A stretch of 64,000 nucleotides of DNA from Dimorphilus gyrociliatus (lineage: Eukaryota > Animalia > Annelida), in contig CAJFCJ010000017.1 in assembly GCA_904063045.1 (NCBI GenBank), positions 496,001 to 560,000 of the forward strand, in the 5' to 3' direction. Shown here one piece after another: positions 28,821-41,646 of this stretch. Every line of letters begins with the position of its first letter. Position 1 is the stretch's first letter. The translations under genes and the position numbers were made by a program. The notes below the pieces were generated by a model that was not told the DNA's origin, did not search any database, and saw only the letters and a program-made list of their open reading frames with translations.

Positions 28821-29585
28821 ATGAATAATGTACAGGCTTTAGCAAAGGCTGGAGCTATTGGGATATGCTCCATTATAACTTGCTGCTTTGGATTTTTCTT
28901 CATTATACCTGGTATAGCGTTAACGGCTTCTTCGAATGACGAACATTTTGACAGTGATTTTTTTGAGGAAAGCAACAGAGGAATGAGAGTTGCCGGGGGT
29001 GTCCTTCTAGCTCTTGGTATTTTATGCGCTATTGTTGGAGTAACTATGTGCTGTTTTGCATGTAAAGCTATTAAATCTAAACAAGCGCAACCCGGAGTTA
29101 TCATTACCCAAGTGAGTCATCGTGTTTCAATAGATATTATTGTTATGTCTTTAAAAGTTTTTAATAAAGTTGTGATCCTGCTGTGTATCTACCTAAATGT
29201 ATAGATATATTCAACTAGCAATCTCTCTGTTATCTGTATGCATCTTATATATTAACTGTGTCATTTTGTAGATCAACCATCCGTTATCTTTTTCTAATTG
29301 ATAAAACAGAACAGATGAATAATTTGTTCTTTTTTTCAGGGACCAACTATAAGCGGACAAGGTCCCCAAGGTCCTGTATATACTCAACAACAGTATGCCC
29401 AATATCATTATGGGCAACCTGGATTACCACCTCAGCAGTATGGTGAACAGATACCTCCACAAAGTATGCCCCCTCCATCAGGCGTACCTCCCCATCCTGG
29501 TATGCCTCCTCAACCAAACAACTATTCCAATCCCTATCAGCAACCTCCACCATTTAATCCGGAATACAACAATCAGCCAGTGTAA
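28821..29585 (+). CDS. Small 2-TM protein with Cys-rich juxtamembrane segments and a Pro/Gln/Tyr-rich tail (~178 aa); member 1 of the hairpin-TM family
   Basis: Exons 28821-29111 (two hydrophobic helices, ends QPGVIITQ) and 29340-29585 (GPTISGQ...PYQQPPPFNPEYNNQPV*). Phase-0 GT-AG intron. Confidence 0.85.
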
Positions 29586-31027
29586 ATATAAGAACATATT
29601 GCAGTTTCCAACAAAATGTCGATATTTAACAATATTTTTTTTATTACCAACATAGGGGTCAACCACCTCAGTACAACGACATTATGAAGCAGTGAAAAGT
29701 TGATGTGAAATAATAATATCAACAATTTAATAATTTTTACTCTCCATTGCAGTATATAAGAATTGGCCCTCTCTCTCACTCTTCCCTCTTAACACGTGTT
29801 ATCCAATAGCCTCAACAGCTTACGTATATTTGTAATATTAAAAAAAAGACTAGTATGCAGTGTTTTAATTAGAAAATTTTAAGTAATCTGGTTTAGTCGC
29901 TTTGAATTATCTGGCTTCGTTTGTTTAATAACTTCAGCTTTGAAAGCAAGAAGGGCAAAAAAAAAAAACTAAAAAATTCACTATTCACTATTTTATTATT
30001 AATTTATTACGTAAGAAATTATAAAGTGAAATATTTTTAGAAAGATAAACTACTTGATATTTTATTGGAAGGTAACAGAATGATTTATTTATTCATTTAC
30101 TTATATTCTATTTTTTATAAGACTTTTGCTTCTCATAATGAAAAAGAGAACAAAAATTGTTTTTGTTCCTGTCAATGCTTTTTTCATATATATTGATAAC
30201 TATGCTTTTTATATGTGTATGTATATATATATATATATATATTAATATTGAAACATTACAGTTTTAACATGAAGAAAGAATATATCTTTAGTGATAAAAA
30301 TGGATTTTGTAGTTTGGAATAGGTAAAAAAAAAAAGTAAATTGATAATACTTCACCACACATTATGAACTATTACTTCTACGTTGTATGAAAATAGGAGA
30401 CTTTCAACCTTTCATCGCTGCTCCGCATCATCAAATAAACGTTTGCATCTCTTAATAATTGTTATCTGTATGTACTGATAATTTTATATCAAGGTTACCT
30501 GTACTATAGCCACTATCGAGAACAATACTTTATACCGACATGGAAATAGTGATAAACCGCTTTTTTGCGTAAAATCTCAAAGTGCATTTACCGCTCTACT
30601 TAAAAGCACGCAAGTTTATCTTATGAATACTAAATATAGTCAAGGACATTTACGGCTAAGCATTGGGTAGTTTATAATAAAACTTTATTACTAAATAATA
30701 ATACTATTTCTCATGCAATACGAGAAAGGTTTCAAGAGAAATTGAGCCGGATAAATATTTATACTGATAAGCTATTATGAAAACTGTATCAGTTCCAATA
30801 CAACAAATCAGACATTAAATGGAATTTAGAGTAATCAGCAGAAATATAAGATAATTCACTTAAGGAAAACGTCTGTACATACATATATCATGTTATATAC
30901 TGTAAAGAAGTATATACATGTATACGTATACAATTGATATATGAAAAGAAAAAAAGTCTTTCTCTCTTTAGCTAATTTAAAGAACTACTTTCTTTCTAAA
31001 AGAAGAAGAGGTTTTGTAGTCTATTAA

Positions 31028-40592: not shown

Positions 40593-40922
40593 TTTTGCCA
40601 TTTCGATTAATTGATCAAACAGTTGATGATAATTTTCGTTGCTTTCCTGTTACTATAATCAATAAATAACCAGGTCATTTAATTAATATAAACTACTTTT
40701 GGAATTAAAGTTTATTAATACTACGTTACTTTAGGAGTTTTTAAAACTATTCATATCATATTTAATGTATTCATCTATTTGAAACCAGTTTTATATTTCC
40801 TTCTCTATTCTCTTACAGAATCTTTTGCTCACTTTAGACGGCGCTAGTATCTAGTCAATTACATTTTCATGTTGGACTGCATCAGTTGTAAGTTGGGGAA
40901 TAATTGTTTACATTAACACTAG

Positions 40923-41646
40923 ATGGGTTCAATTTCTGATAAGAAAGGAGCCCAATTGTCAGCTATTACCTCTTTCGTTACCTCTGTCATCCTATTCTCT
41001 GTCGGAGGTATCTTATATGCATTTTCTGAAAAGGAATTAAGCTCAGACGTTGGTCTAGTAAAGGAAAATTTTACAAATAAACTTGCCAATGCTCCCAGCC
41101 AAGTATTACCTAATGGAAAGCATACGAAATGGAGGAAACTAGAGAGTATCTTGAAGATTATAGAATATAATCAGATATTAAGAAAAGAAAAAGAGAAAGC
41201 TAGAAAGCGTAAGAAAAAACTTAAAGAGAGTTCGAAAATTATATTTATTATTGGCTGGGTAAGCATAGTCGTTTGTCCTGTATTCGTATGCTCTGCAATT
41301 TATTATCATATTAAAGATAAACGTAAGGAAATAACAAGAAATCAAGTAAGTATCCATATCGTATTAGTCTAAATATAAAATTATTAGTAATTTTTCTTTC
41401 AGGTAATTAATTCAAGTGAGCAATCCATTCAAAATGATCAATATGAAAGCTATCATCATCTAAATCAAGATTATTCACCTCCTCAAATATTTGTTGAAGT
41501 TCCTAGATCCGTTCATTCGAGGAATGTTAGTCATTACGATTATACGTTAGTATATTAATATACAATATAATTCATTCATATCCTCATAATCTTTGTTTTT
41601 ATTTAGCGAACCACCGAGTTATGAAGAAGTTATGAAGGGAAATTAA
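40923..41646 (+). CDS. 2-TM protein with a long basic loop and C-terminal PPSY (~201 aa); family member 5
   Basis: Exons 40923-41345, 41403-41545, 41607-41646 (EPPSYEEVMKGN*); 606 nt in frame. Confidence 0.78.

Follow-up and report, generated by a model that had tools for sequence, protein, structure and literature searches.

A 64000 bp stretch of the genome of the annelid Dimorphilus gyrociliatus (GenBank accession number CAJFCJ010000017.1; coordinates 496001 to 560000; assembly GCA_904063045.1), referred to here as the window, was found to carry five small genes on the same strand, g1 to g5, each of which is predicted to encode a protein with two transmembrane (TM) helices followed by a flexible tail with a PPxY motif close to the C-terminus. 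On balance, we lean towards the view that these proteins are membrane-anchored docking sites for NEDD4-family HECT ubiquitin ligases and perhaps also for ESCRT-I, an endosomal sorting complex, a role predicted from motifs in their sequences. The locus contains a single conserved gene, g1, with a closely packed tandem array (g2 to g5) near it, and all five are probably derived from the same ancestor. Coordinates below are those of the window unless another contig is named.

A shared gene plan ending in a PPxY motif

The exon boundaries of g1 to g5 were obtained by reading the DNA of the five loci and were then fixed by translation (Table 1). The first-pass annotation of this DNA had proposed five same-strand genes with a common plan, in which exon 1 encodes two TM helices and is followed by a phase-0 intron and a disordered tail, and this plan was confirmed from the DNA. 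The length of exon 1 is a multiple of three in all five genes, hence the first intron is in phase 0, and in each gene exon 1 contains two Kyte-Doolittle peaks above 1.7 (19-residue windows). All nine introns are bounded by GT and AG, and their lengths of 55–228 nt are consistent with the median intron of 66 bp in the compact genome of this species (PMC7854359). The G+C content of the window is ~30% throughout.

Table 1. Coordinates of the five genes in the window. In each gene the last coding exon is followed directly by the stop codon.
Gene	Position	Strand	Coding exons	Product	Remark
g1 (DgyrCDS10823)	28821–29695	+	28821–29111, 29340–29581, 29656–29692	190 aa	
g2	37101–37884	+	37101–37409, 37465–37601, 37686–37778, 37845–37881	192 aa	length as modelled
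g3	39080–39523	+	39080–39313, 39392–39520	121 aa	unannotated
g4	40016–40592	+	40016–40240, 40317–40589	166 aa	
g5 (DgyrCDS10828)	40923–41646	+	40923–41345, 41403–41545, 41607–41643	201 aa	

The product of g1 has two TM helices, an acidic loop containing FDSDFFEESN, a juxtamembrane QPGVIITQ and a P/Q/Y-rich region encoded by the middle exon, and its third and terminal exon of 37 nt ends PPQYNDIMKQ. In g2, the two TM helices are followed by a tail that includes LPKYEEI and by a 37-nt last exon ending PPSYEEINHC. In the g3 protein, a short loop separates the two TM helices, NQPGVIITL and GPSTSGQ lie on either side of the intron, and the end is EEPPSYSDVMKI; the g4 protein has two TM helices with a loop of 7 residues, and a tail with PPNY, PTAP and a terminal PPPYAPSHL. 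Two hydrophobic helices and a very basic loop of 74 residues are encoded by g5, the 37-nt terminal exon of which ends EPPSYEEVMKGN. The g1 protein was confidently modelled by AlphaFold2, using an alignment of ten sequences, as a helical hairpin (helices at residues 12–38 and 46–88; pLDDT about 90) with a disordered tail.

The first-pass annotation had counted four tails with a PY motif (PPxY or LPxY). The PPxY motifs are real, but the count is five, as PPQY is encoded by the third, 37-nt exon of g1. In all five genes the terminal PPxY lies 5–7 residues before the stop codon, and the last 9–11 residues of the protein start with it. The extended form [LP]PxYxx[IV] is found in four of the five terminal motifs (g1, g2, g3 and g5) and in the internal LPKYEEI of g2, and the tails of the PPxYxx[IV] type end PPQYNDIMKQ, PPSYEEINHC, PPSYSDVMKI and PPSYEEVMKGN. 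The PPxY motifs are enriched over shuffled sequence and are placed exactly at the gene ends. When PPxY motifs no more than 10 residues from a stop codon were counted in the six frames of the window, eight were observed versus 3.3 ± 1.5 in 50 Markov-2 shuffles, and of these eight, five coincide exactly with the ends of g1 to g5, all on the forward strand and downstream of a two-TM exon.

Agreement with the deposited gene calls

Splicing of the tail exons, as put forward in the first-pass annotation, agrees with the deposited annotation for g1, g4 and g5 and for the tail of g2. The deposited gene calls for g1, g4 and g5 have products of 190, 166 and 201 aa and starts and stops identical to those of the models, and the database proteins for g1 (P0002) and g5 (P0001) are the same as the exon translations made here. 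The deposited calls were built by EvidenceModeler with PASA transcript assemblies weighted heavily (PMC7854359), an origin that provides indirect support for the splicing in these calls, short of proof for each gene.

The deposited g2 call (coordinates 37353 to 37884; 108 aa) has a length that agrees with the three tail introns read here. However, it starts at an internal ATG at 37353, and the annotated product therefore lacks both TM helices. An in-frame open reading frame (ORF) running from 37101 encodes both helices and matches the profile of the g1 family described below, and this match supports the upstream TM exon. An intact two-exon ORF with canonical splice sites is present at g3, where the deposited annotation of the contig has no gene call. 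The public annotation is thereby corrected at two places, one where g3 is missing and one where the g2 model looks truncated at its 5′ end.

Relatives of g1 in other phyla

Large protein databases were searched using g1, g5 and the family profile. An exhaustive phmmer search of 1.84 billion proteins with g1 exon 1 as the query returned eight proteins including g1 itself (E 1e-8 to 1e-4). The remainder were a 241-aa protein from the nemertean Tubulanus polymorphus (LOC141900367; E 1e-8), a 175/178-aa protein from the scorpion Centruroides sculpturatus (E 6e-8) and five short exon-1 ORFs from metagenome-type assemblies. A profile search (profile E 1e-11 to 1e-38) added two further proteins, one from a second locus in C. 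sculpturatus, in which the two loci are LOC111634133 and LOC111613663, and the other a 163-aa Logan protein. In the 53–170 aa range, which excludes its own 190-aa product, g1 exon 1 gave no match in a word-index search, and with g5 exon 1 the same type of search returned g5 alone in the 78–247 aa range. All named relatives of g1 carry the annotation 'uncharacterized', and no Pfam domain scores above the cut-off in any of them.

The genes had been described in the first-pass annotation as lineage-specific. This label was premature, and it fails for g1, which has relatives in T. polymorphus (Nemertea), C. sculpturatus (Arachnida) and eukaryotic contigs. The sequences point to an unnamed family of a familiar type and not to a worm-specific invention.

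Significant similarity between g1 and its relatives extends across TM1, the F.DDFF loop and TM2. The family core consists of AKAG..G.C[SA][VI]...FG.F.L.PG in TM1 and an acidic-aromatic loop with F.DDFFE[DE][ST]N; TM2 often ends CC.A.K and is followed by a P/Q/Y-rich tail with PPxY in the C-terminal stretch. All full-length relatives have two TM helices and a proline-rich tail, with PPxY 0–20 residues before the stop codon.

Gene structures were read for two relatives, the Tubulanus protein, which was mapped to its locus (L004), and a gene on an 18-kb contig (L005). In both, a phase-0 intron follows the post-TM2 segment and a phase-2 intron precedes the terminal PY exon, as in g1, g2 and g5. 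The phase-0 intron of L005 lies directly after QPIQGVVIS (L005 coordinates 8304 to 8330), the counterpart of QPGVIIT[QL] in g1 and g3, and a further counterpart, HQGVVYSQ in relative P0006, is likewise found just before a phase-0 intron. Both L004 and L005 have an additional intron in the loop that is missing in the Dimorphilus genes. The introns of the Tubulanus gene at first seemed not to match those of g1, a view that was revised when L005 linked the two in the alignment and the intron phases were taken from the DNA. The L005 contig also carries DNA_pol_B_2 fragments that are Polinton/Maverick-like in look and a minus-strand tandem-repeat block (L005 coordinates 1922 to 4299 and 16200 to 18050).

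In the relatives, a P(S/T)AP motif is found beside PPxY, as PTAPSMAPPSY in Tubulanus, PSAPSAPPPSY in L005 and PSAPPLPPQY in relative P0015. PSAP is also present in both Centruroides proteins, and within the window PTAP occurs in g4 only. In g1, g3, g5, Tubulanus, L005 and P0015, the PY motif is soon followed by a lysine, which could serve as a ubiquitin acceptor site.

Relationships among the five genes

The TM and loop sequences of the five genes had been noted as very different, and the pairwise similarity of the TM exons was indeed weak, with BLASTP comparisons of the g3, g4 and g5 TM exons against the rest at noise level. Exon 1 of g2 matched the g1-family profile with an hhalign probability of 78% (E 1.8e-5) and was the top non-self match of the family hidden Markov model (HMM) among 1918 six-frame pieces of the window (hmmsearch, E 2.4e-4). 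The exons of a 12-TM sugar transporter in the same window, which provide an internal control for hydrophobic bias, gave E values of 27 or worse. The sequence similarity of g2 to g1 is weak but detectable, and membership of g2 in the family by similarity is borderline.

In both g1 and g3, QPGVIIT[QL] is found directly before the phase-0 intron and GP..SGQ directly after it. The QPGVIIT codons (coordinates 29090 to 29111 in g1 and 39290 to 39313 in g3) have five synonymous and no non-synonymous differences in 7 codons, a pattern better explained by selection on the peptide than by recent gene conversion. The terminal coding exon of g1, g2 and g5 is exactly 37 nt long and lies behind a phase-2 intron, and in each case it consists of one base that completes a split codon and 12 further codons, with PPxY at codons 2–6. 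Of the two family introns, g3 and g4 retain the phase-0 intron alone. When g5 was compared with the g1 family using hhalign, only the tail motif aligned, and no sequence similarity between g4 and the g1 family was found by hhalign or by hmmsearch of the window. The ties of g4 to the others are the plan, the phase-0 intron, the PPNY and PPPY motifs and its position between g3 and g5. Taken together, g1, g2, g3 and g5 are likely to be of common descent, and it is plausible that g4 shares this descent.

Membrane orientation

Charge counts for g1 and g3 fit the positive-inside rule for a hairpin with both the N-terminus and the C-terminus inside. The counts for g2 and g4 are ambiguous, and the g4 loop is net positive. 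In g5, the segment between the helices (coordinates 41016 to 41237; residues 32–105) includes 20 Lys/Arg among its 74 residues, with RKEKEKARKRKKKLKE directly before TM2, and also has an NFT sequon. As this loop is strongly basic, the orientation of g5 in the membrane is uncertain. Sequons of the N-x-S/T type are present in the loop of some g1 relatives as well as of g5. The [LP]PxY motif is present in a flexible segment, and charge bias favours its exposure to the cytosol in g1 and g3 and is ambiguous in g2, g4 and g5.

Searches for known domains and folds

Pfam scans were performed for every exon piece (E ≤ 1), full-length g5 (E ≤ 10), and full-length g1 and its relatives (E ≤ 0.1), and nothing above the curated cut-offs was found in any of them. 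The first-pass annotation had named TMEM51, TMEM61, TMEM174 and barttin as examples of two-TM proteins with PY tails. Kinship with these proteins was not shown, as no Pfam model reached its cut-off. The best score was that of TMEM51 (PF15345) on g2 exon 1, at 16.4 bits versus a cut-off of 25.5 (E 0.008), and TMEM51 had no match to full-length g5, full-length g1 or the relatives. TMEM174 (PF15029), TMEM100 (PF16311), PIRT (PF15099) and Neurensin (PF14927) scored 13–17 bits versus cut-offs of 27–34 on two relatives only (P0003 and P0004), with TMEM174 at 15.7 bits versus a cut-off of 27 on the Tubulanus relative. None of these four models matched the genes of the window (exon pieces and full-length g5). 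Barttin, TMEM61, TMEM171, NDFIP (DUF2370), LITAF, Pmp3/Sna3, Comm and FXYD were not among the Pfam matches at the thresholds used.

A Foldseek search of the PDB with the g1 model gave no match at E ≤ 0.001, the structures returned being generic helical hairpins, and nothing meaningful was found in PDB sequence searches with the g5 protein, g1 exon 1, g2 exon 1 and the family profile A2 (phmmer and hmmsearch). A kinship with FXYD/phospholemman was considered from weak PDB matches (E 0.14–0.22) of the g1 loop and TM2 (coordinates 28926 to 29060; residues 36–80) to chains in Na,K-ATPase structures. However, the profile did not improve the score and there was no FXYD match in Pfam, and the similarity was therefore taken as noise, probably due to TM composition. 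The A2 profile also matched 6y0d_A ('Surface membrane protein'; E 7e-5) at profile positions 62–120, a match that we suspect is compositional.

Proposed role as membrane-anchored docking sites

Under the docking role favoured here, the two-helix hairpin would anchor a disordered, proline-rich tail, presumably on the cytosolic side of the membrane. The PPxY in the tail would dock NEDD4-family HECT ubiquitin ligases, through their WW domains, at the membrane that bears the hairpin, and this would lead to ubiquitination either of the protein that carries the tail or of a partner bound through the hairpin or loop, or of both. The ubiquitinated protein or proteins would then be sorted into the endosome/multivesicular-body pathway. 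P(S/T)AP is a ligand of the UEV domain of TSG101, and P(S/T)AP together with PPxY is the classical late-domain combination. The members that bear P(S/T)AP may also engage TSG101/ESCRT-I by UEV binding, in the manner of LITAF/SIMPLE. As P(S/T)AP is found near PPxY in the relatives and PTAP is found in g4, the ancestral module may also have engaged TSG101/ESCRT-I.

Several points weigh against this assignment. PPxY is only four residues long and can be used by other WW proteins too, and the docking function of every member is a prediction at the level of motifs. P(S/T)AP is missing from g1, g2, g3 and g5, and the ESCRT-I part may therefore not apply to them. Given the strongly basic loop of g5 and the net-positive loop of g4, a cytosolic C-terminal tail is not assured in these two proteins. 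The TM exons of g3, g4 and g5 have no significant similarity to the g1 family (hhalign probabilities of 1–3%; six-frame hmmsearch of the window), so that common descent of all five genes would be argued from the plan, intron phases, short motifs and position. As the large-database searches covered g1, g5 and the family profile, relatives or known orthologues of g2, g3 and g4 may exist. In addition, no second family member was found within 10 kb of the g1 relative in either L004 or L005, and the tandem array would be a feature of Dimorphilus as far as these two comparators show.

Comparison with known systems

By analogy, LITAF/SIMPLE is the closest cellular precedent for the motif pair, and yeast Sna3p is the closest by architecture. 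LITAF/SIMPLE, a small protein of endosomal membranes, has a flexible proline-rich region in which overlapping P(S/T)AP and PPSY motifs bind TSG101 and NEDD4, and the motif pair controls sorting from the endosome to the lysosome (PMC5142333; PMC3514783). The relatives of g1 resemble LITAF/SIMPLE (and CDIP1) in carrying both of these motifs a few residues apart. However, the motifs of LITAF are N-terminal and its C-terminal zinc-ribbon LITAF domain inserts monotopically, whereas in the proteins described here the hairpin is N-terminal and the motifs are C-terminal. They also differ in having no Pfam LITAF match, and four of the five genes in the window lack P(S/T)AP.

In Sna3p (Pmp3/UPF0057-type), which has two TM helices, a PPAY at the cytosolic C-terminus binds Rsp5, a ligase of the Nedd4 family, and this interaction drives sorting into multivesicular bodies (PMC2171029). 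The plan of two TM helices with a C-terminal PPxY is the same as that of g1 to g5. However, Sna3p belongs to a fungal and plant family to which no sequence or Pfam similarity was found in the Pfam scans, and it has neither the long P/Q/Y-rich spacer nor the luminal loop that is conserved in the g1 family.

The NDFIP proteins span the membrane with three TM helices and carry their PY motifs N-terminally, and CYYR1 and PMEPA1 are single-pass proteins. NDFIP1/2 (Bsd2 in yeast), CYYR1 and PMEPA1-type proteins are described as small membrane proteins with PY motifs through which NEDD4-family ligases are recruited to, or regulated for, other membrane proteins (PMC5606929, PMC11399591). They are like g1 to g5 in being small, PY-bearing membrane proteins but had no Pfam match here. 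TMEM51, TMEM61, TMEM171, TMEM174 and barttin share with the five genes a two-TM hairpin followed by a cytosolic tail. They differ in that the matches to TMEM51 and TMEM174 were below threshold and confined to the TM region, and barttin, TMEM61 and TMEM171 gave none. PY-like motifs are said to occur in TMEM51 and barttin, and a literature search for TMEM51 with 'PY motif' gave nothing.

ARRDC1 and viral late-domain proteins carry PSAP and PPxY on one polypeptide and recruit TSG101 and NEDD4-family ligases for ESCRT-dependent budding (PMC8402826, PMC6874086). These proteins are soluble or peripheral (arrestin fold, viral matrix), whereas those described here are integral membrane hairpins.

Alternative interpretations

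A more far-reaching proposal, regarded as unlikely, is that the g1-type proteins represent an ancient protostome family, so far unrecognised, of 'cellular late-domain' proteins integral to the membrane, in which a C-terminal P(S/T)AP-PPxY-(K) would recruit ESCRT-I and a NEDD4-type ligase from a TM hairpin and so nucleate intraluminal-vesicle sorting or the budding of extracellular vesicles. The Dimorphilus array would then have arisen by free divergence of the hairpins with the docking module kept, giving versions specific for different compartments or clients.

The genes may instead encode auxiliary (beta-type) subunits of channels or transporters, in which the hairpin and conserved loop bind and modulate a partner, as for barttin, TMEM174, PIRT, TMEM100 and FXYD, and the PY motif sets turnover only. 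This is also thought improbable. The conservation across phyla of AKAG..G.C in TM1, F.DDFFE[DE][ST]N in the loop and the juxtamembrane Q(P)GV[VI][IY][ST] resembles that of a specific interaction surface, and the sub-threshold Pfam matches to TMEM174 (E 0.012), TMEM100 (E 0.006), PIRT (E 0.031) and TMEM51 (E 0.008) and the weak PDB matches to FXYD chains (E 0.14–0.22) are in line with it. However, all of those matches fall under the curated cut-off and are confined to TM segments, and the FXYD score was no better with the profile than with a single sequence. The hairpins of g2 to g5 are not conserved with that of g1, whereas the PY end is, which suggests that selection acts on the tail. An auxiliary subunit would, moreover, overlap with a docking site for NEDD4-family ligases rather than exclude it.

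It is quite unlikely that the PPxY tails dock WW proteins other than ligases (Yorkie/YAP, Kibra, WWOX or dystrophin-type), with the hairpins acting as tethers for signalling or cytoskeletal scaffolds. Beta-dystroglycan-like proteins reportedly have PPxY at the very C-terminus. Binding to PPxY is generally known for group I WW domains (defined in PMC2171029) of many families. However, P(S/T)AP beside PPxY and the extended [LP]PxYxx[IV] suggest a context of endosomal sorting or late domains (PMC5142333; PMC8402826), and the partners of the small PY-tail membrane proteins studied are mostly of the NEDD4 family.

That the five are not one family, and are simply unrelated small genes or ORFs with hydrophobic stretches and a proline motif, g3 and the long form of g2 not being real genes, is very improbable: BLASTP comparisons at noise level for the g3, g4 and g5 TM exons, hhalign probabilities of 1–3% for the same genes and the missing gene call for g3 are as this would predict, but a terminal PPxY is present in 5/5 genes versus 3.3 expected over six frames of 64 kb, the first intron is in phase 0 in 5/5, g1, g2 and g5 have an identically arranged 37-nt terminal exon behind a phase-2 intron, with a counterpart in the last intron of the relatives, QPGVIIT is kept in g1 and g3 despite 5 synonymous changes, and g2 exon 1 is the top non-self HMM match when the sugar transporter exons are at E 27 or worse.

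Neighbouring genes

The next gene downstream of g5 (coordinates 42107 to 43236, forward strand) has a product of 293 aa with just one hydrophobic helix, at the N-terminus, and without a Pfam match or PY tail, and does not appear to belong to the array. A carnitine acyltransferase gene (coordinates 31028 to 33187, reverse strand) is one uninterrupted exon of 719 codons, whereas the neighbouring genes carry introns.

Significance

Small membrane adaptors with PY motifs are already well known, and the result is a motif-level prediction in a non-model animal, which should come as a moderate surprise to specialists. If the tails do dock NEDD4-type ligases, and some of them TSG101, these proteins would form an unnamed group of membrane-anchored sorting adaptors that is not represented in Pfam, with the g1 type occurring at least in annelids, nemerteans and arachnids. 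In that case, the Dimorphilus array would provide a natural experiment, joining a single docking module to five membrane hairpins that differ greatly from one another.

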